This document shows, in pieces, positions 2,983 through 63,678 of a DNA stretch of 64,000 bases (position 1 is the first letter of the stretch; the number at the start of each line of letters is the position of its first letter). The stretch covers positions 1 through 64,000 of the IMG/VR virus record IMGVR_UViG_3300034073_003542; one strand, given 5' to 3'. The position numbers and the translations under genes are program-made. The notes under the pieces were generated by a model that saw nothing but the letters and a program-made list of their open reading frames with translations, was not told the DNA's origin and did not search any database.

Positions 2983-3004
2983 ACAACAATAATGCGGAGA
3001 AATT

Positions 3005-4618
3005 ATGGAAATTGAAATTTTCCCACAAGAGCGTGCCGACAATTTATACGACAGAATACTGTCGAATACATCCGTTTCTTATAGTAGTCTAGCAGAGCCT
3101 TGCTCTAGTGACCACTTAAGAGACTTTAATATTTCACATACTGTAGCATCATTAAATGATTATGATCTATATCATGTGCAGTCAATACTAGTTAGTACTA
3201 TTTGGAATAAGAATGACGATGTTTTTGATGCCTTAGAAACATGGCTCGCTCGTCATAGTCCAGAACATAAACCAGCAAATCTTAATCATGACGAAAAAGA
3301 AATTGTTGGACATATTATATCAAATATTCCAGTTACAGTTGATGGTGGAATTATTCCAGAAGATATAAATACTAGTGAATTACCTGTAAAATATCATATT
3401 TTAACTGGTTCTGTAATCTATTTAGCTTATCGTGAAGAAGATCTAAAGGCTAGAGCATTAAAACTTATAGATGAAATTAAGGCTGGTGAAAAGTATGTAA
3501 GTATGGAATGTTTATTTAAGAATTTCGATTATGCTTTAAAGCCTATTAATGCTGGCCCAGAAACTGAATATAAAATTATCACAAGAAATAAAGATTCTGC
3601 TTATTTAACAAAATTTTTGAGAGCTTATGGCGGTAATGGTGAATATAATGGATATAAAGTAGGTAGATTATTAAGACAAATTACTTTTAGCGGAAAAGGA
3701 TTTGTTGATAAGCCTGCTAATCCAGATAGTGTTGCTTTTATTATTAGTGATTACGAAGCCGAACCAGACATTGAAATCTCGATAAATAATCAAGTTGCCG
3801 CAAACGATATTAAAAAAAATGATGAAAAAATCGACGATATAGAGAATTTGTGTGTATCTAATAATCAGACCCAAAACAACGAAACGGAGAATATTATGAC
3901 AGACCAAGACCTTAATGATATCAAATTAACTCTAGCTGAAATCAAAAACGTCTCAGTTGCCAAGAAAGATTGGGAAGAAGAGATGAAGAAGAAGGACGAA
4001 AAGAGCAAGGCTCAAGAAGAAACTATCGCTGAATTAACAGCTAAGGTTTCTGCTGCTGAAGCCGCTCTTGAAGTTGCTAAGGCTGAACTTGATAATATTA
4101 AGCAAGTTAATGAAGCTAGTGTTTCGGCTCTTAATACAAGTATTGCCGAAAAAGAAACTGTCATTACTGAAAAAGAAGCAGCTATCGCCGAATTAACTGC
4201 TCAACTAACCGCTGCAAATGAAGCCATTGCTGCTTACAAGAATAAAGAAGATGAAATGGCTAAAAAAGAAAAAAGTATGAAAAGAACTGCTAGTTTAATT
4301 GAAAATGGTGTAACATCAGAAGTAGCAGTAACATATGCTGAAAAGTTCTGTGACCTAGACGATGAAACATTCGATAGTGTTACAAGTTTATTAGCAGCAA
4401 AAAAGACTGTTGCAGAAACGGTAGCAGAACCAGTTGTTGAAGAACCAGTTGTGGAAAATTCAACAGTTGCTAATGCTGACGAAAGCATTTTGGAGAACGT
4501 AGAAGTTACTTCAGAAGTAAATTTGGCAGTAGCATCGGAAGTTGAAGATCCAATCGCTACTACTCGTGAAGCATTAGTTAATTTCGTATCCAGCAAATTA
4601 GTAAAATCAAAGAAGTAA
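3005..4618 (+). CDS. Prohead maturation protease fused to coiled-coil scaffold
   Basis: N-half has NLNHD, VSMEC and VDKPANPDS motifs typical of phage prohead proteases. C-half is an Ala/Glu/Lys-rich coiled coil. GGAGA RBS; sits between portal and capsid genes. Confidence 0.75.
   Translation: MEIEIFPQERADNLYDRILSNTSVSYSSLAEPCSSDHLRDFNISHTVASLNDYDLYHVQSILVSTIWNKNDDVFDALETWLARHSPEHKPANLNHDEKEIVGHIISNIPVTVDGGIIPEDINTSELPVKYHILTGSVIYLAYREEDLKARALKLIDEIKAGEKYVSMECLFKNFDYALKPINAGPETEYKIITRNKDSAYLTKFLRAYGGNGEYNGYKVGRLLRQITFSGKGFVDKPANPDSVAFIISDYEAEPDIEISINNQVAANDIKKNDEKIDDIENLCVSNNQTQNNETENIMTDQDLNDIKLTLAEIKNVSVAKKDWEEEMKKKDEKSKAQEETIAELTAKVSAAEAALEVAKAELDNIKQVNEASVSALNTSIAEKETVITEKEAAIAELTAQLTAANEAIAAYKNKEDEMAKKEKSMKRTASLIENGVTSEVAVTYAEKFCDLDDETFDSVTSLLAAKKTVAETVAEPVVEEPVVENSTVANADESILENVEVTSEVNLAVASEVEDPIATTREALVNFVSSKLVKSKK
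3896..4618 (+). CDS. Putative internally initiated scaffold protein (240 aa, same frame as the protease)
   Basis: GGAGA (3886-3890) lies 5 nt before in-frame ATG 3896 at the start of the coiled coil; TGTGTATC motif at 3851. Confidence 0.55.
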   Translation: MTDQDLNDIKLTLAEIKNVSVAKKDWEEEMKKKDEKSKAQEETIAELTAKVSAAEAALEVAKAELDNIKQVNEASVSALNTSIAEKETVITEKEAAIAELTAQLTAANEAIAAYKNKEDEMAKKEKSMKRTASLIENGVTSEVAVTYAEKFCDLDDETFDSVTSLLAAKKTVAETVAEPVVEEPVVENSTVANADESILENVEVTSEVNLAVASEVEDPIATTREALVNFVSSKLVKSKK

Positions 4619-5134: not shown

Positions 5135-6142
5135 ATGTCACGTATCGAAAAATTTCAACCAACTCCAGAGTTAACAGACCTTCTTAAAAAGAGCGGCAGT
5201 GCTAACCAGCAAGAATCCTTGGCTGCTAGTGCAGAAATCGCCAAGGCTATCACTGTTCCTCTACGTAAGGGTGTTATCAGTGGTGAAAATACTGGCGGCA
5301 TCTTTACTCCCGTTAAGTTAGAACCAGGCGCAAGTCCAGAGTTTCCTCTTGACTTCCTATCTCCTGGCTCAGAACGTGATCACGTTGCTTACACAATTCC
5401 TAATCATGGCTACATTCCACAACGTAGTGTTGAAGGCGACTACGTTATGGTTCCAACCTACGACGTAGGTTCAAGTATCGACATGAACTTGAAGTACGCT
5501 CGTGACGCTCGTTGGGACGTTGTTGGTCGCGCAATGGAAGTTCTTAACGGAAGCTTCGTTAAGAAGATGAATGATGATGCATGGCACGTTCTTCTAGCTG
5601 CTGGTGTTGGTCGTAACATCGTTGTATACGATAGTGACGCTGCTGCTAATCAGTTTACAAAGCGTCTTATCAGTTTGATGAAGACTGTTATGCGCCGTAA
5701 TGGTGGCGGAAATAGCACAAGCCAGAATCGTGGCACTTTGACCGACCTATATCTAAGTCCAGAAGCTATCGAAGATATGCGTAACTGGAATGTTGATCAG
5801 GTTGATGAAGTTACTCGTCGTGAGATCTATACCGCTGCTGATGGAACGTTGAATCGCGTGTTTGGCGTTAACCTTCACGACCTCGACGAACTCGGGGTTG
5901 GTATGGAATATCAGTTGTTCTATGAAGACGTTCTTAGCGGAACTCTTCCTGGTGGCGACAGCGAAATCGTTGTTGGTCTTGATCTATCGAAGGATGATGC
6001 CTTCATGATGCCTGTTCGTGAAGAAGTTAGCATCTTCGAAGATCCAACCCTTCATCGTCAACGTCGTATGGGATGGTATGGATTCGGAGAATGGGGTTTC
6101 GGCGTTCTCGACAATCGCCGTGTCATTCTTGGTTCTCTATAA
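5135..6142 (+). CDS. Major capsid protein (HK97-like fold)
   Basis: 335 aa, strong RBS, canonical position, followed by an intrinsic terminator; C-terminal GWYGFGEWGFGVLDNRRV pattern. Confidence 0.85.
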   Translation: MSRIEKFQPTPELTDLLKKSGSANQQESLAASAEIAKAITVPLRKGVISGENTGGIFTPVKLEPGASPEFPLDFLSPGSERDHVAYTIPNHGYIPQRSVEGDYVMVPTYDVGSSIDMNLKYARDARWDVVGRAMEVLNGSFVKKMNDDAWHVLLAAGVGRNIVVYDSDAAANQFTKRLISLMKTVMRRNGGGNSTSQNRGTLTDLYLSPEAIEDMRNWNVDQVDEVTRREIYTAADGTLNRVFGVNLHDLDELGVGMEYQLFYEDVLSGTLPGGDSEIVVGLDLSKDDAFMMPVREEVSIFEDPTLHRQRRMGWYGFGEWGFGVLDNRRVILGSL

Positions 6143-6173
6143 TTCTGATTGTCCTACAATCAAACAAAGATCT

Positions 6174-6201
6174 AAGGCTGCTTTCGCAGCCTTTTTTCTT
6201 T
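6174..6201 (+). terminator. Rho-independent terminator after major capsid gene
   Basis: AAGGCTGC-TTTC-GCAGCCTT stem-loop followed by TTTTCTTT. Confidence 0.85.
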
Positions 6202-6214
6202 GGTATAGGGAAAC

Positions 6215-6222
6215 GGTGTATA
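6215..6222 (+). promoter_or_regulatory. Candidate phage late promoter (GGTGTATA)
   Basis: Immediately downstream of the capsid terminator and 49 nt before ATG 6264. Confidence 0.5.
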
Positions 6223-6263
6223 CTTTATTGACCTGTCCTTCCGACACATAAGATGAGGTATAT

Positions 6264-6794
6264 ATGTACTGGGAACCAGAACTACTAATTATGATCAGGG
6301 TTTTAATTAACGATCTAGAAAGTCCATCTACATATTCTGATGCAAGAATAACTCAATTAGCTGTTGTTTCAGCAAAATATGTGCTACAAGATGCTACTTT
6401 AGCAACTAGTTATACTATTGACGTTGTTAATGAGACAATTACTCCAGATCCAGCAGACCCAAATACTAGAGACGAAGTTTTCTTAGGTTTAATAGGAATG
6501 AAAAGTGCTTGTTTATTAGATCACAGTACTTATCGTACTAAAGCGGCCCTGGAAGGCATTAGCACGCGATTGGGGCCAGCAGCATTAACAATTGGAGGGA
6601 ATCTATCTGGATATAAAACCTTGCTTGAAACAGGTCCGTGTGCCTTATATGATCAACTTATACTTGATAATAATATGGGTAATGTGTTGACTGTTCGAGC
6701 CGTATTAAGTCCATTTGTTGGAAATAATTTTGATCCAATAAATATACTTGGAAATCGTGGATCTTTTGGGTTAGGTGATCCTAATAGATATTAA
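6264..6794 (+). CDS. Head-tail adaptor/connector protein
   Basis: 176 aa, helical N-terminus (IRVLINDL...YSDARITQL), first gene after the capsid gene. Confidence 0.6.
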   Translation: MYWEPELLIMIRVLINDLESPSTYSDARITQLAVVSAKYVLQDATLATSYTIDVVNETITPDPADPNTRDEVFLGLIGMKSACLLDHSTYRTKAALEGISTRLGPAALTIGGNLSGYKTLLETGPCALYDQLILDNNMGNVLTVRAVLSPFVGNNFDPINILGNRGSFGLGDPNRY

Positions 6795-54007: not shown

Positions 54008-54784
54008 TTATTCGACTATTGTTTGCAGTTGTTCGTCTGTAAAAACGTCTCTTTTGTCGATCATTAAACAATATCTATAGTTTGGAGCACTAAATAATAA
54101 GCTTGATTTGTCTTTATTGATATATGAAACAAAACTTGCTAGATCCTCGTATACAGTTTTATTTGCTGTGTGAACTAAGTTCTCAAAGTCTCCAAACCTA
54201 TTAACAGATAAAACAAATCTATATTTTTTATTGACATTAATGACTTCATGTAAAACATTATAGTATGGTGAGTCAACAACCATTGTTTTTACTTCCCATA
54301 AATTTTTATAGTTACTATCTTTGATTATTTTTTCGATATTGAAATAGCTATGACGTTGATCTTTATCTTGATATCTTACAAAGATAAGTTTTTGCGGTTG
54401 AATTGATAGATTCTTTATCTTATCTCCAATTTGTGTTAATTCATCAGAAGACATATCTTTTAGATTAATAACCATAAGATATTGAATAAAATTTGTTTGG
54501 TGGAATGTATTAATTTTTTCTTCTATTGTAGAATCTTCTGGAAAAAATGAATTTTCACGATATCCCAAACATTTCTTTTTATTAATAATGAAGAATTCTA
54601 GTTCATCGTCATAAGCTTCTAATATATCAACATTATGATTTTTATATTTATCGATATAGTTTAAATGGCATCCTTTTTGTGTGCGATCTTCATATATAGC
54701 AAATGCGCACTTTTTACATGGAGTATGTATTTTATCTATTGTTGGTAAAATAGGTTCTTCTATTTTTTGTTCGGTGTTTGACAT
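54008..54784 (-). CDS. Hypothetical protein with N-terminal Cys cluster
   Basis: CKKC...C...C; coupled to the GT4 gene. Confidence 0.55.
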   Translation of the reverse strand: MSNTEQKIEEPILPTIDKIHTPCKKCAFAIYEDRTQKGCHLNYIDKYKNHNVDILEAYDDELEFFIINKKKCLGYRENSFFPEDSTIEEKINTFHQTNFIQYLMVINLKDMSSDELTQIGDKIKNLSIQPQKLIFVRYQDKDQRHSYFNIEKIIKDSNYKNLWEVKTMVVDSPYYNVLHEVINVNKKYRFVLSVNRFGDFENLVHTANKTVYEDLASFVSYINKDKSSLLFSAPNYRYCLMIDKRDVFTDEQLQTIVE

Positions 54785-57627
54785 GTTAAATAATTCTCCG
54801 GTAATAAACGTTCTGGATGATGTCTAATTTCTTCGTGTAGAATTTTTTCATTCATTATTTGTTCTAGTATTTCAACCGCTTCTTTATAAGAAAAACCAGA
54901 AATCTTACCTCGTCTAGCAACAATTCTTTGTGACATATCTTTAATCAAACATTGTATATTTGAGGTTTTTAATAGAAAGGGGTCATTAATAACATTAACC
55001 ACTATATATTCTACAAATTCTCGCGGAGATAAGTTAGATGGTACTGAAATATTTTCGTGGTTTGTCTTAAATATAGTTGGATCATTCCATGCTACTTTTT
55101 TAGTAATATCTATTGTATCAAATACTTCATCCCAAACTTTGAATGTATGATCCCATGTATACATATCAATACATTTTTTTCTGGTTTCTTCCCCCAGTCT
55201 CCTACGTTCATTATGGTCTTTCTTGAAGAAATCATACAAAAACTGAGATGTAAAATCATTATCTGGATAAACTCTATCTGCGTTTGTTTCTAGTTCTCTA
55301 AATTTTTTCTGTATTGGAATAAGTGTTCCTCCAACATTCTCGCAAATTTCTGTCATGGCACTATAATCAACACTTGCTATAGGAACACCAGCACTAGCAG
55401 CTTCTAGTTGTGGCATACCGAACCCCTCGCACTGAAATGTTGCTCCTATTTTAGTAGTCATAGTATGGTCGTCTTCTACGGTAACGCACCAAACATCATC
55501 TTTATAGTTAGATTCTTGAATTCTTTTAATTTTTATTAAATGGTAATTCTGATAATAAACATTGTTAGTTCCGTTGCGTTTGGTTGAGAAATCACCTTTT
55601 TTAATATTACATCCATAAATTTCAAAACTATAACAATCTAATCTGTTTTTCTGGTCTGTTGTATTGTGTTCTACTCTATTGATTTTTGATACCGAAAATG
55701 GTATTCTTAGTCTTCTTAAGATGTGTTTTATTTGTTCTGCAAGTGTGATAGAGATTGTACTAATTTGAGAATAATTTTTTTCTTCACAATAGTGTCCATC
55801 ACCCATAAACATCCCTACTAAAATTTCTTTTTGTTTTTCTATAGGTAGATACAAACACCAATTTGGCAAACATTTATCTTCTTTGCTTCCAAACCAAGTA
55901 AAAAAAAGATTTCCATGTAGAGATGACCATAGAGAATTATCTTGAGCTAATCTATCTCTGTATGGTCTGATTGATTCTACGTTTGATATACTTAATTGTT
56001 TAAAGGCGTTCGATGCAACATAGTGGTTTTCTGTTTCTTTTATATGTGAAGTTATTTTTAGTCCTTTAGCTGTCGAATTTGCCGCATGTCCATCGGCAAC
56101 AAAAAGACCCATAAATCTACAAAAATCTTTATCTATATTAATATATCGTGGATAGGAATAACCACCAATAACCTCTATATAGTCTTCTTTAGTTATATAT
56201 GTATCATTGATTTCTTTGGCAATATCTATTTGTTCTATATCTTTAATCGTATCGTCTATTGGAAAACATAACATATCTCCTGATTTTAATTCATTTAACT
56301 CATATTTTCCTGGTTCCGGCAGTTTTTTTTCTTCTCTTAATTTGTCTCCAATTTTTTCTCTAACTGTTCTCGATTTGTCGTTTTTAATTTCTGTTTGCGT
56401 ATAAGCCGGAAATTCATGATTTTCTGTAGCTATTAATGTTTCGTAGTCTCCATGAATAGACAGTTCTAATATTTTTTTATTGTGACTTTTTGTTAGATTT
56501 TTCCATATGTTAGTAATTGGCTTCCATCTATTTTTATGGGTCCATGCTTCATCTCCAATTTTTGTTTTAGAAATAGGTATCCATAATATCTCGTTATTTC
56601 TTTTAATTCTAATTTCTTCATTTTTACCAAGACATATTGAATATTGTATATATACGTCAAATAGATTATAGACCTCATTCAGTTGTTCATTATTTAAGCC
56701 ATTAGATGTAGTTATAAAAGCTGCACTGTTACGAATACTACAATGAGGGCAATCAACTATTCCGCTACTATATTTATTTGCGCACCATTTAAGACACTTG
56801 TTACACTTATATGTAAAATATACTTTGTCTAATAACTGAAACTCTAGTAATAAAGCAGGAATATCCCAACCAGCTTCTTCTGGATATGATGTGTGAAAGT
56901 AAAGAACGGTATTATCTGCCATTGGATCATTTTCTGTTTTGAGTCTATCAAGATATTTACGAAATACCCGTAGAAGATCTGGCATAAGTTTTCGTTTTTG
57001 GTTTCTCATTACGAAACCCACAACATTAACATCACGACCAAAAGTTTTTATTTGATGTTCTTTTTTGTCGTTTATTGGATAAAATTCATTAGCGTTGATG
57101 CCAGCATTAACAATCTTAGGAAAAATATTTAACTTATCAGCTCCCTCGTTAGTTAAAGTATTTTTGGCCCATTGAGTATAGGGAACAACAATATCAGCAT
57201 TAGCATAAGTATAATACCATTCTGTTTTTTGTGGAGAGGAATCTACTGTCGGCATTATTACCCAATGAAAATGTCTACGATATGGACTCATTTCTTGATA
57301 AGAACTCATCCAATAATCTCTGACATCAAAAACTATATGGGGCTTAAAATCAAGAATAGCTCGATTAAATCTCCAGTTTCCAAATTCATTAATTTTTTGT
57401 GTCTGGTATAGTTTTATTTTTTGTTCATCTTTAAGAGACGGATTATTTGGATATATCTTCCAAACACACTCTTGTACCCTAGCATTATCTTCTGCACAAT
57501 AACATGCTAGTTCTGCAATCTCATACTTACCAGAATTGTGTAGTCTAGTTAGTAGTTCTTTGCCGTAAACCCCATAACCACTTGAAATATAGTGCGCATC
57601 GTTAACGATAAATAATTTTTTTTTCAT
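54760..57627 (-). CDS. GT4 (GT-B) glycosyltransferase with Zn-ribbon insert, interrupted by an intein
   Basis: SGYG, RNQKRK, CNKC/CPHC. Removing the intein restores FDVYIQYSI-CEGFGMPQLEA (E-x7-E); spliced product about 554 aa. Confidence 0.85.
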   Translation of the reverse strand: MKKKLFIVNDAHYISSGYGVYGKELLTRLHNSGKYEIAELACYCAEDNARVQECVWKIYPNNPSLKDEQKIKLYQTQKINEFGNWRFNRAILDFKPHIVFDVRDYWMSSYQEMSPYRRHFHWVIMPTVDSSPQKTEWYYTYANADIVVPYTQWAKNTLTNEGADKLNIFPKIVNAGINANEFYPINDKKEHQIKTFGRDVNVVGFVMRNQKRKLMPDLLRVFRKYLDRLKTENDPMADNTVLYFHTSYPEEAGWDIPALLLEFQLLDKVYFTYKCNKCLKWCANKYSSGIVDCPHCSIRNSAAFITTSNGLNNEQLNEVYNLFDVYIQYSICLGKNEEIRIKRNNEILWIPISKTKIGDEAWTHKNRWKPITNIWKNLTKSHNKKILELSIHGDYETLIATENHEFPAYTQTEIKNDKSRTVREKIGDKLREEKKLPEPGKYELNELKSGDMLCFPIDDTIKDIEQIDIAKEINDTYITKEDYIEVIGGYSYPRYINIDKDFCRFMGLFVADGHAANSTAKGLKITSHIKETENHYVASNAFKQLSISNVESIRPYRDRLAQDNSLWSSLHGNLFFTWFGSKEDKCLPNWCLYLPIEKQKEILVGMFMGDGHYCEEKNYSQISTISITLAEQIKHILRRLRIPFSVSKINRVEHNTTDQKNRLDCYSFEIYGCNIKKGDFSTKRNGTNNVYYQNYHLIKIKRIQESNYKDDVWCVTVEDDHTMTTKIGATFQCEGFGMPQLEAASAGVPIASVDYSAMTEICENVGGTLIPIQKKFRELETNADRVYPDNDFTSQFLYDFFKKDHNERRRLGEETRKKCIDMYTWDHTFKVWDEVFDTIDITKKVAWNDPTIFKTNHENISVPSNLSPREFVEYIVVNVINDPFLLKTSNIQCLIKDMSQRIVARRGKISGFSYKEAVEILEQIMNEKILHEEIRHHPERLLPENYLTCQTPNKK
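55432..56634 (-). mobile_element. Intein (401 aa) with LAGLIDADG homing endonuclease, Gln-terminated
   Basis: Block A CLGKNEEI, block B ATENHEF, LAGLIDADG motifs FMGLFVADG and LVGMFMGDG, block F VWCVTVEDDHTM, end GATFQ followed by +1 Cys. Confidence 0.9.
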
Positions 57628-57655
57628 TATCTTCAGAGTCTTTCTAGTTATTTAA

Positions 57656-57688
57656 GTAAAAGAAAAGCCCCTTTCGGGGCTATTCTCT
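57656..57688 (-). terminator. Rho-independent terminator after ssb
   Basis: Minus strand AGCCCC-GAAA-GGGGCT followed by TTTCTTTT. Confidence 0.85.
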
Positions 57689-57710
57689 TACTCACATTTG
57701 ACGCCGTTTA

Positions 57711-58130
57711 TTAGAACGGCATTTGATTTCCACCATCTTCTACAGATGATGCAGCAACAGCTTCTGCTGGCTCTGTTTGCTTACGCTTAGAGCGAATTAA
57801 CTTAGCAAAGTTGTTAATACGAACCTTATAACTACTATGCTTTACTCCATCCTTTTCCCAGTTGTCGTTCTTTAATTGTCCTTCTACCAAAACAGCTTCG
57901 CCCTTTTTAAAGTTCTCTGCAATGTTTTGTGCAGCAGTATCCCAGGCTTCACAACGAACAAACGTAGTTTCTTCGTCTTGTGTTCCATCGGCGCGAGTAA
58001 AGCGACGAGAAGTTGCGACAGTAACGGTAACAACAGCGGTCTGACTACCATTATTTCCATTGATATAGCGAACTTCTGGATCACGGACCAAATTACCACT
58101 CAACATAACTGTATTCATATCATTCTCCAA
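57711..58130 (-). CDS. ssb: Single-stranded DNA-binding protein
   Basis: NTVMLSGNLVRDPEVRY, FVRCEAW, KKGEAVLVEGQL, acidic tail ending in PF. Confidence 0.95.
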   Translation of the reverse strand: MENDMNTVMLSGNLVRDPEVRYINGNNGSQTAVVTVTVATSRRFTRADGTQDEETTFVRCEAWDTAAQNIAENFKKGEAVLVEGQLKNDNWEKDGVKHSSYKVRINNFAKLIRSKRKQTEPAEAVAASSVEDGGNQMPF

Positions 58131-58171: not shown

Positions 58172-58200
58172 ATTATAACAGGTGGGGAGGTCTGTGTCAA
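58172..58200 (-). promoter_or_regulatory. Consensus sigma70 promoter TTGACA-N17-TATAAT (with extended -10 TG) for ssb
   Basis: -35 at 58200-58195 overlaps the dnaE-C stop; -10 at 58177-58172. Confidence 0.85.
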
Positions 58201-59834
58201 GTCTTGGCAACGTAAACCTTATCAACTATGAGAGAATCTCCCTTTTGTGACCTATTTCCCATAATTACGACAATATTGCCCAAAAACAAGGCTTGTCGGT
58301 ATTGTTTATAAGTCTCCGGAAAAACAATAACATTGTCGAGAACACCTGTATTGTCTGATATCTCCAAAAATGCCATTTCTTGCCCAGCGGTCTTACCCTT
58401 TTTGGTTTTTGTAACATTGACATTCTCGATTTCCCCGCCCAAAACAATATTTTTATTGGCAAAGAAGGAAGTAATAGGGTTTTGATTAGCTTTCTTGAGT
58501 TCTTTACATGTTACATTCGTCATGCTAATGTCATACGCGTCCACTTTCGAGCAACTAACACTAGTACCAAGAATATTGTACTCTGCATCACTTAACCAAT
58601 CAATAGTATCACTCAAAGAATAAGGTGGATTCTTAAATAGCTTCAACTTATCTTGTACTGCCGCAACTCTTTTAGTTTGTACTTTTCCGCTTTCTAGTAG
58701 TGCCGTTAATAGTTCGCCCAAGGTTTTATAATGCAGATTTGCATTACAGAATTTGAGTTCACCACCAGATAAATCCGATATTAACTGAAACTCATATAAC
58801 ATAGACGATCTAGACTTATTGATATAAGATATTGCTCCACACTCTATAATAGCTTTTGCTGCTGTGGAATTGATATCGTTTAGAACTAGAAATAAGGTTT
58901 CTAGCCAATTTAATTCACCAATAGGCTTTGGTAATTTTTCTTGGATTTTAATCAACTTCTTATATACAGAATCGCCCAAACTCTTAATGTCCCTCAATCC
59001 AAAATAGATATCTCCATCATGAATAAAGAAATACTCGTTCATCATTCTTAAATCTGGAAGACGAACAGTAATATCCATTTCTGTGGCATTTTGGAAAAGC
59101 CCCTTTATCTCTGCATGAGGATCAATCTTATCACGAGCAAATTTGAGATACGCCTTGAAAAACATCTTGGGAAAGTGAGCTTTAGCATATGCTGATAAGT
59201 ATGAATTCATAGCATATGACACAGCATGTGAGTGATTGAATGAGTAGCGTTGACTTTTTTCGATCCATGCAAATATCGTTTCTGCTTCACTTTCGTTTAC
59301 AATTCCTAGTTTTTTACATCCTTCCATAAAAGCAGTTTTTACCTTAGCCATTTCATCAGCTTTCTTTTTGCCGATAGCTTTTCGTAAATCGTCAGCTTGT
59401 TGAGGAGTAAATCCAGCAATACGAACACAAATATCCATCGCTTGTTCTTGATAGATCATTTCGCCGTAACTATCTTTTAGGGAAGGCTCTAGAGCAGGAT
59501 GAAAATAGTCAATACTTTCTTCTCCATTTTTTCTATCGATATAGTGTTGAGTAACACTTTTATTATCACGGATACTTTCGAGGCACCCAGGTCTAACTAT
59601 CGATAATAAAGCAGAAAGATGTTCTATGATTTCTGGTTTTAGTTTTTTAGCAATACTGCGACCTAATCTGGACTCTAGCTGAAAAACTCCCTTAGTATTT
59701 CCGCTGCCAATAAGTTTCCATGTTCTTGGACATTCCAGATTAATATTTTCGATATCTGGATCAAATATGACTCGTCTATTCTTATCTAGATTAAACTGGC
59801 AGCCACATGGGAATTTTATAATCTGATTAGACAT
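58197..59834 (-). CDS. dnaE: DNA polymerase III alpha, C-terminal part (fingers, HhH, OB fold)
   Basis: TKGVFQLES, RPG, IYQEQAM, ADDLRKAIGKK, YSFNHSHAVSY and MAFLEISDNTG OB motif. Confidence 0.9.
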   Translation of the reverse strand: MSNQIIKFPCGCQFNLDKNRRVIFDPDIENINLECPRTWKLIGSGNTKGVFQLESRLGRSIAKKLKPEIIEHLSALLSIVRPGCLESIRDNKSVTQHYIDRKNGEESIDYFHPALEPSLKDSYGEMIYQEQAMDICVRIAGFTPQQADDLRKAIGKKKADEMAKVKTAFMEGCKKLGIVNESEAETIFAWIEKSQRYSFNHSHAVSYAMNSYLSAYAKAHFPKMFFKAYLKFARDKIDPHAEIKGLFQNATEMDITVRLPDLRMMNEYFFIHDGDIYFGLRDIKSLGDSVYKKLIKIQEKLPKPIGELNWLETLFLVLNDINSTAAKAIIECGAISYINKSRSSMLYEFQLISDLSGGELKFCNANLHYKTLGELLTALLESGKVQTKRVAAVQDKLKLFKNPPYSLSDTIDWLSDAEYNILGTSVSCSKVDAYDISMTNVTCKELKKANQNPITSFFANKNIVLGGEIENVNVTKTKKGKTAGQEMAFLEISDNTGVLDNVIVFPETYKQYRQALFLGNIVVIMGNRSQKGDSLIVDKVYVAKT

Positions 59835-59841
59835 CTATATT

Positions 59842-60528
59842 TTATACCTTAAATGAATCTCTAAACTTAACTTTACTACCAAGATTTCTGAATAACTTCA
59901 TGAAACGAATCATTATTTCTGCTGTGTCTTTAACGTCTTTAATAGCATCATGCGCTCCGTCTTTACTAATTCCAAGATATTCGCGCAAATTATCCATAGA
60001 ATAACTTTTGAGGTCGCTATTACTTTCAAACCAATAAAACACAATATTCATAACATCAACCACATCGCGTGGATAGAAAATATTTGTTGTATTATCTTTA
60101 TTGGTCTGTCCATATTTTTTACTCAAACGATCAACAATACGTAAATCAAAACGATTGATATTATATCCAGCAGCAATAGGAGCACTAAATTGGCTTTTGC
60201 GACTTCCTCGGCTATGATATTTATCAAGATAATTTACAAACATATTCCAGCTTTGTTGCTGTATTGGATATTTTTTCCATTCTTCTAGAACAGCAGCTTC
60301 TGAACAGCCCTTAACTTTACCGTGGAAACTTAATATGTCTGTAGTATATGTATAGTTATCATCTGCTTCCAGAACTTCTGGTTTGAAATTTACATTAAAT
60401 TCTGATCCTTTAACTATTTCTAATTTAACTGGGTCAACAATAACAGCAGCAATTTGTACAGGAGAACAAGTTTCTGGATTATTGCCGTCTGTCTCAAAGT
60501 CAAATACGCAAATTGGATTTTTGTTCAT
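59842..60528 (-). CDS. DEDDh 3'-5' exonuclease (DnaQ/epsilon-like)
   Basis: VFDFETDG, GYNINRFD, AHDAIKD. Confidence 0.9.
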   Translation of the reverse strand: MNKNPICVFDFETDGNNPETCSPVQIAAVIVDPVKLEIVKGSEFNVNFKPEVLEADDNYTYTTDILSFHGKVKGCSEAAVLEEWKKYPIQQQSWNMFVNYLDKYHSRGSRKSQFSAPIAAGYNINRFDLRIVDRLSKKYGQTNKDNTTNIFYPRDVVDVMNIVFYWFESNSDLKSYSMDNLREYLGISKDGAHDAIKDVKDTAEIMIRFMKLFRNLGSKVKFRDSFKV

Positions 60529-60533
60529 CTAAA

Positions 60534-60716
60534 TTATTCCTCAATTTCTACACTTACCAATGGTTTAATCATAATCTTTGTATCAGGATTATCGACTTCT
60601 GCTGCGTTCAATGTTTTACAGCAGCTTACTTTTTGATCTGTTACTCTTGTGTATTGTTTTCCGTTGTAAGTAAAAACTTGTCCAACACTCAATGTCTTAA
60701 ATAATACAGCCTTCAT
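60534..60716 (-). CDS. Small beta-rich protein with SCC motif
   Basis: GGAGA RBS; fills the gap between dnaE-N and the exonuclease. Confidence 0.6.
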   Translation of the reverse strand: MKAVLFKTLSVGQVFTYNGKQYTRVTDQKVSCCKTLNAAEVDNPDTKIMIKPLVSVEIEE

Positions 60717-62629
60717 TTGTTATCTCCGTTTCTAATAAGGTTTCTTGAATATCCATAATTTTATCTAGATATGCTATACCTAAGATATCAAGTTTAATTA
60801 CCCCGATAGCTTCTAGATCTTGCATTTCCATACCAGCAATAAGTTGTTTGTTCTTACTATCATAAATCATTGGGCAGATTTCTGCAAGCGGATCAGAGCT
60901 AATAGCTATTCCAGCAGCGTGTTTTGATTGATTGCTTTTTGTTCCTTCAAGCCTAATAGCCTGTTCAAAGCGTTTTGCTAATGGACCCTCTAATTCGCCC
61001 GCTTCATTATAGAAACAATAATCTCTAAGATGATCAGCCATATTTTCTAGGCTCCATCCTAAAATAGACGCTTCTCCCGTTTCCTCTTTCATTGTCTGTA
61101 GTTCGTCGGAAATCTTAGATTCTTCTGGAATATTTTTGGTAATTTTATTCATTTCTTCAAATGATACATTACCATATACTCTTAGAACATCTTTGAGGGC
61201 GGCACGACCTTTGATTGTATTAAATGTAATCATTTGTGAAACATTTTTATGACCATATTTATCTTTGATATATTGTATAACGTGTTCACGCTTTTCAATA
61301 GGAACGTCAACATCAATATCTGGTAGACTTATATGATCAGCAGTATTTCTTCCTTCGTTATAAAATCTTGAAAATAATAGATTGTATTTGATCGGATCTA
61401 TTTGTGTAATACCAATTAAATAAGATACTAAACAACCGGCACTCGACCCACGGCCAGGGCCGGGAAGCCAGCCGCTTCTTCTAATAAAATCTAAAATATC
61501 CGACACAATTAAAAAATAACTACTAAGACCAGCTCCCTGTAGAATATCCAATTCACTTTTAATTCTGTCAATATATATTTGATGTTGATCTTGTGGAATT
61601 TTGTCTTTGATTTTTTTAACCCAACCCTTACGACAAAGTTCGCGCAAATACTCGTCCTCATTAAATCCGTCAGGACAAGGAAATTTGGGAAGTCTTGGTT
61701 TGCTTAGAATAGAATATTCCTCAACCATATCGTTAACAATATTTGTATTAGCTATCTCTTCTTCGGTATGGATTGCCGCCATTTCTTCTTGTGAAGGAAT
61801 ATGATAACAATCGCTCTTAAAGAAACACCCAAGTGGCACATCTTCTCCGCGAGATAATTTATCACTAATTTCGCTAAATGTTGTTTTCAGATTATTGCAC
61901 AACAAAATACGCTGATCTTCACAATCAGATCGTTCACAATAATGCGCATCAGGAGTACATATTACTTTAACGCCCGTCTTCTTTCCAATTTCCCTAATAG
62001 CATTAGTAAGATCAACTTGAATAGGAAGATTGTCCTTATCAATTAGCTGGGCCTCAAGAAATAGCTGACTACCGAAAATCGTCTTGAGATATTCAACGTG
62101 TTTCACGCCTAGCTCTAACCAGTTTTCTCGCAATCGCCCATAGTCTTCAACAATTTCATCTGCTAAACTTGATCCTAAATGACCAGTTATACCTATTAGA
62201 TTTCCACTATTCAATTTCTTAATGGACTCAAAATCTAGTCTTGGTTTATAATAGAAATTTTCAGGTAAATTACTTGTGGAAACAATTTTAATCAGATCTT
62301 TCCATCCTTGTAGGTTTTTGCATAAAACTAAGAAGTGAGACAAACTTTTATTTGATTCATCTTGAATTGTTGGATCATTTTTACATATATATAACTCGCA
62401 ACCCAAAATAGGTTTGATTTTTGCTGCTTTTAAGCTCTTATAGAATTTTACAACGCCCGCTATGGAGCCGTGGTCGGTAATAGCACAAGCTGTTGCTCCG
62501 ATAGCTTTGCATCTTTGAGCAATTTTGTCTGTTTTGCTGAGTCCGTCAAGCAAAGAAAAATGCGATTTACGAATGGACGTGTAGCGGCACATACCTGGCC
62601 GACACGTCCAAAATTTTCTCCTCTGTCAT
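60697..62629 (-). CDS. dnaE: DNA polymerase III alpha, N-terminal part (PHP + palm); reading frame interrupted by a 7-nt gap at 62569-62563
   Basis: ATG 62629 frame reads MTEEKILDVSARYVPLHVHS-stop; the next frame continues HFSLLDG...AITDHG...GPGRGSSAG...PDIDVD...KLDILG. Joined product 641 aa. Confidence 0.85.
62574..62610 (-). promoter_or_regulatory. GC-rich mRNA stem-loop immediately 5' of the dnaE coding gap (candidate recoding signal)
   Basis: UGGACGUGU/ACACGUCCA 9-bp stem plus CGGC/GCCG 4-bp stem, 2-nt bulge, 9-nt loop. Confidence 0.7.
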
Positions 62630-62631
62630 AA

Positions 62632-63678
62632 TTATTCTATTGTTCCTGGAGCCTTATAATGAGCAACACTATAGTCTTTTGGTTGATATTTCTTGATGGT
62701 ATCATTCATACCCATTAGATTAATATCGTGTCTGATTTGTTCACACATAGTCATTGGTGATCCGTTCTCGCATACTTGACCGTCGCGGTACTCTATAATA
62801 GGCAGAATTGTGGGATGTCCAACAAACGTGTTTTTACCGAAATAGCAAAACTTCTTACATCTCCACGATTTAGAAAGTTTTGGTTTCTTGCATCTTTTAA
62901 TTGCCTCAAATTTAACACGAAGCATTTCTTCGGTTTCGGCCAAATCATCCTTGCTAAAACACACAGAAAAAGGTCCGCCATCATTAATAAAATTGATAGT
63001 CACAATAATATGTTCATATTGAGGATACATTTTACTAATAGCATAATGATATATTCTTAATTGAGGGTCTTTGTAGAGTTTGGCTAAGGTTTTTTCTTCT
63101 CCTGTCGCCCAATCTTTTCTTCTTCCTGTTTTTAAATCGATAATTTCTAATGTATCTTTATTTTCCTGTACTATAAGGTCTATTGTTCCTTTGATTCCTA
63201 ATTTTCCCCTAATTTTTCCTTCAGGTAAATCGTACTCATAATTCGCCCATTCTTTATCAATAATGATATCAAAATGTCCCTCACTACTAAAGATGTTTCT
63301 GTTGCGTGGATCAAACATCCCATTGTGTGATGTGAGCATCGTATTGACCCATTTGAGGCATTCTTTTAAATCTTTGGGTGTCCAGACAAGGTTTTTAGAT
63401 GCGGCCGTGTAATGATCGTATATGGATTTGGTCAATTTTTCGACATTATACTTTTTAATATCAATCTTGCCAATCATATCATCTGTATAAGATTTTGTAC
63501 CATTTTGTTCACATAATTTAATTTCGGCCAAAATTTCCATAACCTTATGGCAAATACTACCTTTATCTGCTGCTTTTCCTGATGGGCTTTTAATACCAAT
63601 ATTATATTCAAGAAAATAGGCGTGTTCACAGAGGCTATGTGTGTTATATGATGAACTTCTGAGATATGTTATTATCAT
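62632..63678 (-). CDS. PD-(D/E)xK exonuclease, Cas4/RecB/AddB-like
   Basis: SSYNTHSLCE, GSICHKVME, GTIDLI, IIDLKTG, QLRIY, plus Cys in CKKFC...C. Confidence 0.85.
   Translation of the reverse strand: MIITYLRSSSYNTHSLCEHAYFLEYNIGIKSPSGKAADKGSICHKVMEILAEIKLCEQNGTKSYTDDMIGKIDIKKYNVEKLTKSIYDHYTAASKNLVWTPKDLKECLKWVNTMLTSHNGMFDPRNRNIFSSEGHFDIIIDKEWANYEYDLPEGKIRGKLGIKGTIDLIVQENKDTLEIIDLKTGRRKDWATGEEKTLAKLYKDPQLRIYHYAISKMYPQYEHIIVTINFINDGGPFSVCFSKDDLAETEEMLRVKFEAIKRCKKPKLSKSWRCKKFCYFGKNTFVGHPTILPIIEYRDGQVCENGSPMTMCEQIRHDINLMGMNDTIKKYQPKDYSVAHYKAPGTIE

Follow-up and report, generated by a model that had tools for sequence, protein, structure and literature searches.

How does a jumbo phage make its replicative polymerase when the first 14 codons of the gene are cut off from the rest by a stop codon plus four bases? 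We examined this question at the 5' end of a dnaE gene on the minus strand of a 64,000-nucleotide window (positions 1 to 64,000 of IMG/VR record IMGVR_UViG_3300034073_003542; Table 1). The original prediction was that a ribosome hops from a UCG codon over UAA-A to a second UCG, helped by an upstream hairpin. The sequence reads exactly as described there, and comparative evidence that was not available to the original prediction supports its interpretation, although the hop itself is inferred from sequence alone, without protein, ribosome-profiling or RNA data.

An interrupted dnaE 5' end

In frame 0, the sequence gives MTEEKILDVSARYVPLHVHS followed by a stop, after which reading continues in the +1 frame as HFSLLDG. 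The ORF caller starts the gene inside the hairpin (60697..62592, MCRYTSIRKS), and the Pfam PHP match of this called ORF begins only at profile position 5, while uninterrupted relatives start at position 2. Joining the two ORFs across the gap gives ...LHVHS-HFSLLDG, the spacing found in uninterrupted relatives and in Taq DnaE (2hpi). One uninterrupted relative aligns with Taq DnaE from residue 7 without indels through this motif, and an N-terminal H-x-H metal-binding motif contiguous with S-L-L-D-G is obtained in the window only if ORF1 and ORF2 are joined.

Table 1 Features of the dnaE locus in the window.
Feature	Position	Strand	Description
PD-(D/E)XK nuclease gene	62632..63678	-	Usual upstream neighbour of dnaE in both interrupted and uninterrupted relatives; Pfam PF12705, E = 6e-17; conserved ...YKAPGS.E-stop ending; TAA stop at 62634-62632, ORF called under the standard code
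Upstream ATG	62627..62629	-	2 nt after the nuclease stop; gives a 20-codon ORF1
Shine-Dalgarno-like GAGGAG	62618..62623	-	6 nt upstream of TTG 62611
In-frame TTG	62609..62611	-	Gives a 14-codon ORF1
ORF1	62570..62611	-	14 codons from TTG 62611 (M/L-DVSARYVPLHVHS); encodes the first PHP-domain strand with the H-x-H metal-binding motif
5' stem-loop	62574..62610	-	Start-codon region (UGGACGUG...) pairs with the L-H-V-H codons (...CACGUCCA); inner CGGC/GCCG helix; ends 2 nt before the take-off codon
Take-off codon UCG (Ser)	62570..62572	-	Last sense codon of ORF1
Stop codon UAA	62567..62569	-	In the A site at take-off
Coding gap	62563..62569	-	7 nt: UAA, A (62566) and the landing codon UCG (62565-62563)
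ORF2	60697..62562	-	Rest of the DnaE N-terminal polypeptide (PHP and palm domains), read in the +1 frame after landing; end coordinate includes the stop codon; Pfam PHP E = 2.6e-32, DNA_pol3_alpha E = 2.4e-71; 44-74% identical to the main-clade relatives
DnaQ/RNase T-like exonuclease gene	59842..60528	-	Between the two dnaE halves; Pfam PF00929, E = 9e-13
C-terminal half of the split DnaE	58197..59834	-	Fingers and HhH domains; Pfam PF17657, E = 2.5e-44, and PF14579

The 5' hairpin is very strong, folding at -22.2 kcal/mol (z = -4.15), and 1 of 200 shuffles folds as well. It is the second most stable 40-nt window among 63,960 windows on both strands of the 64 kb (mean -3.6, sd 2.7). No Rfam family matches at the site, and the window has no tRNA genes, so there is no phage tRNA(Ser) for UCG within these 64 kb.

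We first asked whether the interruption could be an assembly or sequencing error, or a sign of a decaying pseudogene, since these are metagenome-assembled contigs. The same sequence is present in three contigs with different metagenome ids; the window is probably one of these, so this argues against an assembly error. There is also no homopolymer at the site. Together with the 33 distinct variants described below, which share a conserved architecture and compensatory changes, and the full length of most complete ORF2s, this makes an error or pseudogene very unlikely for the window.

Recurrence of the interruption in related phages

Relatives were sought in GenBank and in metagenomes. Megablast of the locus against GenBank phages found no match, and tblastn found only relatives at 34% identity or less, so no cultured relative exists. 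There is no host information. In contrast, metagenomes revealed 33 distinct related phage dnaE 5' ends interrupted at the same codon, with gaps of 5, 6, 7, 9, 10, 11, 12 or 17 nt; several of these 5' ends are present in two or more contigs with different metagenome ids. In each of these, removing the stop through the landing codon restores the canonical H-x-H-[S/T/G]-x-[F/Y]-S-L-L-D-G spacing, which is kept without indels in the uninterrupted relatives found here and in Taq DnaE. Most relatives are uninterrupted, but a large subset is interrupted and carries the hairpin. The distribution on the DnaE tree is patchy, with the interrupted state requiring at least 11 changes, and none of about 75 distant loci surveyed from other phage DnaE clades (36% identity or less) was interrupted at this site, so the cassette is clade-restricted.

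A TAA or TAG directly follows the take-off codon in 33 of 33 interrupted relatives, and take-off and landing codons match in 26 of 33. These pairs are UCN/UCN in 24 sequences, ACU/ACU in one locus (L051; loci are numbered with the prefix L) and GGU/GGU in another (L070). Under standard wobble rules every UCN pair could be read by one tRNA(Ser), as UCC take-off lands only on UCU among the UCN pairs. Landing Ser is never AGY (0 of 26 tested), while uninterrupted genes use AGY in 14 of 34 Ser codons at that site (Fisher p = 1e-4). However, two lineages comprising 7 of the 33 sequences (L058, and the L085/L096/L098/L105/L114-like 9-nt class with ACT) pair a UCC take-off with an ACU landing, a first-position mismatch. 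The GGU/GGU case is a single contig for which only two close relatives were found, both uninterrupted, and it may be a plain indel or an error. The window has no relative closer than 74% identity, so covariation of its UCG/UCG pair could not be tested within its own lineage.

These patterns disfavor a +1 programmed frameshift at UCG-UAA-A, which the original prediction offered as an alternative and in which Lys-tRNA would read the +1 codon AAA to yield ...LHVHS-KS-HFSLLDG (junction peptide LHVHSKSHFSLLDG). The window's shift is indeed +1, with a stop codon in the A site as in prfB-type frameshift sites, but UCG cannot re-pair with CGU in the +1 frame, and the sequence 3 nt upstream is not SD-like but the hairpin arm CACGUCCAU. 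The product would also carry two extra residues inside a motif whose spacing does not vary in the relatives examined or in Taq DnaE. Moreover, in-frame gaps (6, 9 and 12 nt) and +2 gaps (5, 11 and 17 nt) cannot be explained by a +1 shift. We consider this explanation very unlikely.

RNA structures flanking the gap

A hairpin pairing the start codon with the H-V-H codons is present in all but one of the interrupted sequences, the exception being a weak singleton, and is absent from 43 uninterrupted relatives. Many sequences were found with a pattern built from the hairpin arms, so outer-stem conservation in that subset is circular, and the statistics given here therefore use the set found by protein similarity. 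In this set, the minimum free energy is -18.2 kcal/mol for 12 interrupted genes compared to -4.3 for 43 uninterrupted genes (p = 1.7e-7), although related sequences are not independent and the p-values are rough. Interrupted relatives average -18 to -19 kcal/mol. All 35 dnaE ends recovered by the hairpin-arm search have the stop. Because the MAFFT alignments placed the 13- and 16-codon ORF1s and the different gap classes out of structural register, base pairs were counted in register by script, which revealed compensatory changes in the 9-bp outer stem. For example, a GTG start goes with a CAC His codon in L011, L013 has GACATG/CATGTC and L066 has ATGACGATG/CATTGTCAT. Inner helices switch between forms such as AAAGG/CCUUU and AGAGG/CCUCU. 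L011 also has the window's layout of an upstream in-frame ATG, then GGAAGGA, then a GTG start at the foot of the hairpin.

Sequences with gaps of 9 nt or more also have a covarying 3' hairpin that starts at the stop codon. In a gap-swap permutation test, native gap-plus-codon combinations averaged -6.2 kcal/mol compared to -3.7 for swapped ones, and 0 of 20,000 permutations reached the native value. The window's 7-nt version lacks this hairpin (-2.6 kcal/mol). We rejected an SD-like reading of the GUGAA or GUGGG tracts in longer gaps, because other variants have AGAGAA or AGCGAA, and these also pair with the downstream codons; what is conserved is pairing rather than SD character. In the window, only one base (A) lies between the stop and the landing codon.

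Coding potential of the two reading frames

We next considered whether the gene might need no recoding, with ORF1 serving as a leader peptide, its hairpin regulating initiation and DnaE starting at ATG 62592. This ATG is in frame with ORF2 and lies near the apical loop, the equivalent ATG is in frame in four of the gap-10 relatives, and sequestration of the ORF1 start codon by the hairpin is typical of translational control. However, the ATG is a by-product of the Tyr-Val codons (TAT GTN), is out of frame in the gap-5, 6, 9, 11, 12 and 17 variants, is absent or cut off by a stop in four gap-10 variants and has no good SD upstream in the window. In 19 of 33 loci ORF2 has no start codon at or before the landing codon, with the first in-frame ATG/GTG/TTG lying 5 or more codons past it. 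The resulting protein would lack PHP profile positions 1-4, including both His residues.

ORF1, in turn, is 14 codons in 28 of 33 interrupted relatives and keeps the exact DnaE N-terminal motif through synonymous changes, with Leu using 5 synonymous codons and Pro using 3, which indicates selection on the peptide. ORF2 is full length: 24 of 28 complete ORF2s are 607-620 aa, compared to a median of 613 for uninterrupted genes, while three are shorter (421-461) and the unsplit L070 is 1038. A start at ATG 62592 is therefore disfavored and, in our view, unlikely. In the in-frame 9- and 12-nt variants a GUG follows the stop in frame, so termination followed by reinitiation is conceivable there.

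Removal of the gap at the RNA level is not excluded by sequence alone, and the two flanking hairpins could in principle bring the ends together. However, no mechanism appears to be known that removes 5-17 nt from bacterial or phage mRNA, and there are no slippery or repeated tracts for transcriptional realignment. Wobble-tolerant matching of the two codons and exclusion of AGY codons are predicted by tRNA re-pairing and not by RNA joining, leaving an RNA-level event as the least likely of the alternatives.

A proposed bypass mechanism

The best explanation, which we hold with good but not complete confidence, is that this dnaE gene carries a programmed translational bypass cassette at its 5' end. 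In the proposed mechanism, ribosomes start at TTG 62611 (or ATG 62629), translate ORF1 and pause with peptidyl-tRNA(Ser) on UCG in the P site and UAA in the A site. The peptidyl-tRNA then unpairs instead of the chain terminating, the mRNA slides 7 nt, the same tRNA re-pairs with the second UCG and decoding resumes at CAU, producing one polypeptide of about 635 aa with the canonical PHP start ...LHVHSHFSLLDG. The suggestion in the original prediction that the hop acts as a regulatory gate on replication remains speculation.

We infer that the GC-rich 5' stem-loop may drive the hop. At take-off its 3' arm (the L-H-V-H codons) is inside the ribosome while its apical part has already emerged, and zipping up the remaining roughly 9 bp at the mRNA exit would pull the message through the ribosome. 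This would explain why hop lengths cluster at 9-11 nt and why no long nascent-peptide signal seems needed. Because the 5' arm contains the start codon, forming the hairpin would also block the next initiation. Pairing of mRNA as it exits the ribosome has been proposed as the forward driver of gene 60 bypassing (bioRxiv 10.1101/2024.12.09.627546).

The origin of the cassette is also inferred. A roughly 240-aa HNH-type endonuclease ORF abuts ORF1 in four lineages (L013, L037, L058 and L128), but also abuts one uninterrupted gene (L054; Fisher p = 0.07), and the window has no endonuclease gene next to the cassette. The cassette may be a footprint or partner of an HNH homing endonuclease that targets the conserved H-x-H coding DNA, as MobA does for T4 gene 60. 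It is somewhat more likely than not that these loci form a diverse family of hairpin-driven bypass cassettes that spread with, or as immunity against, such endonucleases, which would make them a second, independently evolved counterpart of the T4 gene 60/MobA system.

Comparison with known recoding systems

Natural programmed bypassing is known from very few systems, namely the T4 gene 60 family, yeast mitochondrial byps and the candidate phiHau3 terminase sites, and its driving force is still debated. We found no description of a dnaE hop in the papers searched. With dozens of natural variants at one site, a graded series of gap lengths, a 3' stem-loop present in some and absent in others, a very strong 5' hairpin and a very short nascent chain, the family is close to a ready-made test of whether pairing of exiting mRNA can drive bypassing without a peptide signal. 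It also means that ORF callers mis-start the replicative polymerase gene in these phages, so the H-x-H motif looks missing.

The T4 gene 60 cassette with the MobA homing endonuclease (topoisomerase subunit; Manning and Atkins, bioRxiv 10.1101/2022.08.31.505936) shares matched take-off and landing codons with wobble tolerated, a stop codon directly 3' of take-off, a 5' stem-loop upstream of take-off and, for variants here with gaps of 9 nt or more, a stem-loop that begins at the stop codon. Both are placed inside an invariant metal-binding motif of a replication enzyme and have a patchy distribution, with an HNH endonuclease gene directly upstream in some lineages and apparently lost in others, although the endonuclease link is only inferred here, and in both the host gene is itself split into two polypeptides. 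However, there is no sequence relationship, the host gene is dnaE rather than topoisomerase and the gap is 5-17 nt rather than about 50. ORF1 is only 11-16 codons (up to 20), too short for a gene 60-type nascent-peptide signal (46 codons), so bypassing, if it occurs, probably does without one. The 5' stem-loop is the strongest and best conserved element here and contains the start codon, while in gene 60 homologues it is poorly conserved. There is no GAG mini-SD 6 nt before landing, the landing codon of the longer variants sits inside the 3' hairpin and the window's version, a minimal form, has no take-off stem-loop at all.

The candidate 10-nt bypass after UUA in the Streptomyces phage phiHau3 terminase (PMC10732093) similarly involves short gaps (7-10 nt) that shift the frame in an essential phage gene, a 5' stem-loop proposed as a stimulator and a comparative argument that a simple frameshift would disrupt the conserved protein junction. 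There, the trigger is a rare sense codon tied to host tRNA(bldA) availability and the sites are internal to the gene and found in only three genes; here, the trigger is a stop codon, 33 variants sit at one site right after the start codon and covariation of two hairpins is clear. Low-level hops over stop codons in E. coli reporters (Weiss, Dunn, Atkins and Gesteland 1987; cited as ref. 47 in PMC10732093) likewise appear to involve peptidyl-tRNA leaving a codon next to a stop and re-pairing with a matching codon a few nucleotides downstream (+5 or +6), but are probably adventitious, at about 1% or less, and not conserved. Here the arrangement is conserved, sits in an essential gene and is accompanied by dedicated RNA structures.

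The prfB (RF2) +1 programmed frameshift also uses a stop codon in the A site as the pause signal, but needs a P-site codon that re-pairs in the +1 frame (CUU U) and an SD 3 nt upstream, neither of which is present here. Finally, the byp elements of Magnusiomyces capitatus mitochondria (cited in PMC10732093 and bioRxiv 10.1101/2022.08.31.505936) are many mobile-looking inserts bypassed between matched or near-matched codons, with mismatches at landing tolerated. Those inserts are 27-55 nt, mitochondrial and scattered over many genes, with no start-codon hairpin and no stop-codon requirement.

Structure of the dnaE 5' end

We first examined the minus strand downstream of the PD-(D/E)XK nuclease gene, where a short reading frame follows the nuclease stop codon with two possible in-frame starts, an ATG and a TTG that lies six bases after GAGGAG. 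This frame (ORF1) reads MTEEKILDVSARYVPLHVHS and then reaches a TAA stop codon, while the +1 frame (ORF2) reads ...KSHFSLLDGLSK... and runs on for 622 codons. The local layout is TCG, TAA, A, TCG, CAT. The long ORF is the PHP-plus-palm part of a DnaE-type polymerase (PF02811, E = 2.6e-32; PF07733, E = 2.4e-71), but its PHP match begins only at profile position 5, compared to position 2 for uninterrupted relatives. One uninterrupted relative aligns with Thermus aquaticus DnaE (2hpi), whose matching stretch is FAHLHQHTQFSLLDG, from residue 7 without indels through this motif. Upstream of the stop is a hairpin folding at -22.2 kcal/mol (z = -4.15), the second most stable 40-nt window of 63,960 in the 64 kb (mean, -3.6; sd, 2.7). 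The original prediction had described a stop codon and one extra base between two TCG codons, preceded by a GC-rich hairpin, and all of its descriptive statements are correct.

The most stable local hairpin (-24.3 kcal/mol) lies directly downstream of the SSB gene, where an intrinsic terminator would be expected, and another unusually stable hairpin (-19.9 kcal/mol) of unknown purpose lies inside the dnaE N-terminal ORF. The polymerase itself is split into two genes, PHP plus palm (about 630 aa) and fingers plus HhH (545 aa), separated by a 60-aa ORF and a DnaQ/RNase T-like exonuclease gene. Because N-terminal ORFs of about 610-620 aa are the rule in the main-clade relatives, the split appears to be a clade feature; distant relatives are single polypeptides of 1015-1123 aa. 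Just downstream of ssb, a 955-aa ORF has weak matches to an intein splicing domain (below the Pfam cut-off for the intein model) and a LAGLIDADG domain, and may be an intein-containing gene. Cumulative GC skew peaks near 42 kb, where AT skew changes sign, consistent with a switch in gene orientation between two divergent gene blocks.

Coordinates of features in the window and in related contigs (L numbers denote dnaE loci on related contigs).
Sequence	Feature	Position	Strand
Window	PD-(D/E)XK nuclease gene	62632-63678	minus
Window	TAA stop of the nuclease gene	62634-62632	minus
Window	Upstream in-frame ATG	62629	minus
Window	In-frame TTG	62611	minus
Window	5' hairpin	62610-62574	minus
Window	ATG chosen by the ORF caller	62592	minus
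Window	First TCG (proposed take-off codon)	62572-62570	minus
Window	TAA stop of ORF1	62569-62567	minus
Window	Second TCG (proposed landing codon)	62565-62563	minus
Window	End of ORF2	60697	minus
Window	Split DnaE polymerase region	58197-62611	minus
Window	Hairpin inside the dnaE N-terminal ORF	61435-61474	minus
Window	60-aa ORF	60534-60716	
Window	DnaQ/RNase T-like exonuclease gene	59842-60528	
Window	SSB gene	57711-58130	
Window	Hairpin downstream of the SSB gene	57655-57694	minus
Window	955-aa ORF with weak intein and LAGLIDADG matches	54760-57627	minus
Window	Peak of cumulative GC skew	about 42000	
L056	HNH endonuclease homologue	about 5938-6615	
L120	HNH endonuclease homologue	about 3935-4594	
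L054	HNH endonuclease homologue	2271-2942	
L070	GGT-TA-GGT	2990-3000	

Recurrence of the interruption in related phages

We next scanned viral contigs by protein similarity using ORF2 alone, which returned 76 loci. Three contigs with different metagenome ids carry the identical site (the window is probably one of them). Most relatives are uninterrupted, for example MNYIPLHVHSHFSLLDG or MKNYIPLHCHSHYSLLDG, but 12 distinct sequences are broken at exactly the same codon, with ORF1 ending H-x-H-S/T/G followed by a stop and the polymerase continuing in another frame or the same frame. A DNA pattern made of the two outer hairpin arms recovered 117 stretches, of which 35 are dnaE 5' ends, and all 35 carry the stop. 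A metagenome scan added one new distinct sequence (L222) and three further contigs carrying sequences already seen, although the window's own lineage has no close relatives. In total we identified 33 distinct interrupted sequences. In contrast, in a survey of about 75 loci from more distant phage DnaE clades, none is interrupted at this site.

Gap lengths and codon matching

Counting from the stop through the proposed landing codon, the gap is 5, 6, 7, 9, 10, 11, 12 or 17 nt, with 7 nt in the window. In each sequence, removing this stretch restores the H-x-H-[S/T/G]-x-[F/Y]-S-L-L-D-G spacing seen in the uninterrupted relatives and in Taq DnaE. A +1 shift at UCG-UAA-A would insert two residues into this invariant motif, lacks both a re-pairing codon and an SD, and cannot resolve the in-frame (6, 9 and 12 nt) or +2 (5, 11 and 17 nt) gaps of the sister elements; one mechanism that fits all of them must skip the whole stretch.

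The codon before the stop and the codon at the resumption point share their first two bases in 26 of 33 sequences: UCN/UCN in 24, ACU/ACU in L051 and GGU/GGU in L070. Under standard wobble rules, third-base differences would stay within what one tRNA(Ser) can read, with UCU paired with UCU, UCA or UCC, and UCC paired only with UCU among the UCN pairs. Uninterrupted genes encode this Ser with AGY in 14 of 34 cases, while the interrupted genes never do (0 of 26; Fisher p = 1e-4). Two lineages (7 sequences) are exceptions, with UCC before the stop and ACU at the landing position, where the A of ACU forms part of the 3' hairpin stem. We give little weight to L070, a distant, unsplit DnaE (30% identity) on a single contig, with a 5-nt gap in which the stop overlaps the landing codon and only a weak upstream hairpin; its 80-85% identical relatives are uninterrupted, making it either an independent minimal hop or a plain indel.

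Hairpins flanking the gap

To compare structure upstream of the gap, we folded the 45 nt ending at the take-off codon of each gene. Among sequences found by protein similarity, interrupted genes folded at -18.2 kcal/mol (n = 12) and uninterrupted genes at -4.3 kcal/mol (n = 43; Mann-Whitney p = 1.7e-7), and using all sequences the values were -19.3 (n = 31) and -4.3 kcal/mol (n = 43; p = 3e-13), although part of the larger sample was retrieved with a hairpin-derived pattern and the statistics ignore phylogenetic non-independence. The outer stem is 9 bp, with the start codon and the next two codons (AUGGRCGUG) pairing with the His-Val-His codons (CACGUCCAU), and ends one or two bases before the take-off codon. 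Compensatory changes occur in this stem: L011 has a GUG start and its His codon is CAC instead of CAU, L013 has GACAUG/CAUGUC, and L066 and L222, whose motif is H-C-H, have AUGACGAUG or AUGGCAUUG opposite CAUUGUCAU. The inner helix also switches type (for example, AAAGG/CCUUU, AGAGG/CCUCU, CGGC/GCCG and GCACA/UGUGC), using synonymous Leu and Pro codons on the 3' side and free amino-acid changes on the 5' side.

Interrupted genes have a three-codon N-terminal extension (M-D/G-V-...) that supplies the 5' arm. By homology the window's ORF1 starts at the TTG (14 codons, as in 28 of 33 sequences), and L011 shares the window's extra in-frame ATG six codons upstream. At equal downstream divergence (64% nucleotide identity), the 27 nt encoding the motif are 78% identical among interrupted genes and 65% among uninterrupted ones.

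In every variant with a gap of 9 nt or more, the stop codon and spacer pair with the Tyr-Ser-Leu codons downstream (for example, GUGAA/UUCAC, GUGAG/CUCAC, UAGAGAA/UUCUCUA, AGCGAA/UUCGCU and UAGCGA/UCGCUA), and the landing codon sits at the top of the 5' arm or in the loop. Swapping gaps between loci destroys the fit, with native combinations averaging -6.2 kcal/mol and chimeras -3.7 kcal/mol; none of 20,000 permutations reaches the native value, though these sequences are related and the test is not a clean probability. The window (7 nt) and L011 (6 nt) have no such structure and are the minimal form of the cassette.

Translation of ORF1

Comparison of the interrupted genes also indicates that ORF1 is translated as part of the protein. 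Leu is kept through five synonymous codons and Pro through three, while Tyr is kept in 32 of 33 sequences and both His residues in all 33. In 19 of 33 loci, the first ATG, GTG or TTG in the ORF2 frame lies five or more codons past the landing codon. An alternative is that the polymerase starts at the ATG chosen by the ORF caller, with ORF1 as a leader peptide, but this would remove both His ligands and is not general across the family: that ATG comes from the Tyr-Val codons (TAT GTN), is out of frame in all but the +1-shift classes (gaps 7 and 10), and is absent or cut off by a stop in four of the eight gap-10 variants.

Of 28 complete ORF2s, 24 are 607-620 aa, compared to a median of 613 for uninterrupted genes; three are shorter (421-461) and the unsplit L070 is 1038. 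Some interrupted relatives have a further disruption or insertion later in the dnaE N-terminal gene (L058, L064 and L229, where ORF2 ends after about 461 aa, and L066 and L404, with a 2202-nt match for about 606 residues), which could be a second mobile insertion. An artefact or pseudogene is excluded by recurrence, covariation and full-length ORFs.

Distribution and adjacent endonuclease genes

On a maximum-likelihood tree of 74 distinct ORF2 proteins, the interrupted state needs at least 11 changes, of which well-supported branches alone force 7. In four loci (L013, L037, L058 and L128), a roughly 240-aa ORF lies between the nuclease gene and ORF1 and ends at the foot of the hairpin. This ORF matches PHROG endonuclease and HNH families (E down to 7e-22), and its GenBank phage relatives are annotated as HNH endonuclease. 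However, adjacency is only suggestive (4 of 29 interrupted against 1 of 45 uninterrupted, p = 0.07), as the same family also lies directly upstream of one uninterrupted dnaE (L054), and the window has no endonuclease gene next to its cassette. In L056 and L120 homologues lie about 2-3 kb downstream of the dnaE start, which in L120 is just past the end of the N-terminal ORF, suggesting that the whole dnaE region is a hotspot for these endonucleases.

Interpretation and comparison with known bypassing systems

Based on metagenomic sequence alone, the simplest account of these features is translational bypassing, in which peptidyl-tRNA leaves the take-off codon while a stop codon occupies the A site, the mRNA slides, and the same tRNA re-pairs at the landing codon. 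Removal of the gap at the RNA level is not formally excluded without RNA data, but we know of no such mechanism and it does not predict tRNA-compatible codon matching. Our full-text literature searches found the gene 60 family, the phiHau3 candidates, yeast mitochondrial byps and reporter hops, but nothing on dnaE, and Rfam has no family at the site. Thus, while bypassing is known, this cassette family, its architecture and its host gene are not described in the literature we could search.

Wills et al. (bioRxiv 10.1101/2024.12.09.627546) argue that pairing of mRNA as it leaves the ribosome drives forward bypassing in gene 60, and a 5' stem-loop was also proposed for the 10-nt phiHau3 terminase bypass (PMC10732093). 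While a driver role for the hairpin, the efficiency of the hop and any regulatory use are inferences, the geometry here fits such a driver: at take-off the roughly 9-nt 3' arm lies within the ribosome, the loop, about 20-23 nt upstream, has emerged, and the commonest hops (9-11 nt) are about as long as the outer stem.

Matched codons with wobble tolerance, an adjacent stop, a stem-loop starting at the stop, a 5' stem-loop and a homing endonuclease partner that is often lost are the defining features of the T4 gene 60 system and its newly described relatives (bioRxiv 10.1101/2022.08.31.505936). The differences from that system are nonetheless substantial: there is no homology and the host gene is different, the gaps are 5-17 nt rather than about 50, ORF1 is too short for a tunnel-bound peptide signal, and the 5' hairpin is the dominant conserved element and contains the start codon.
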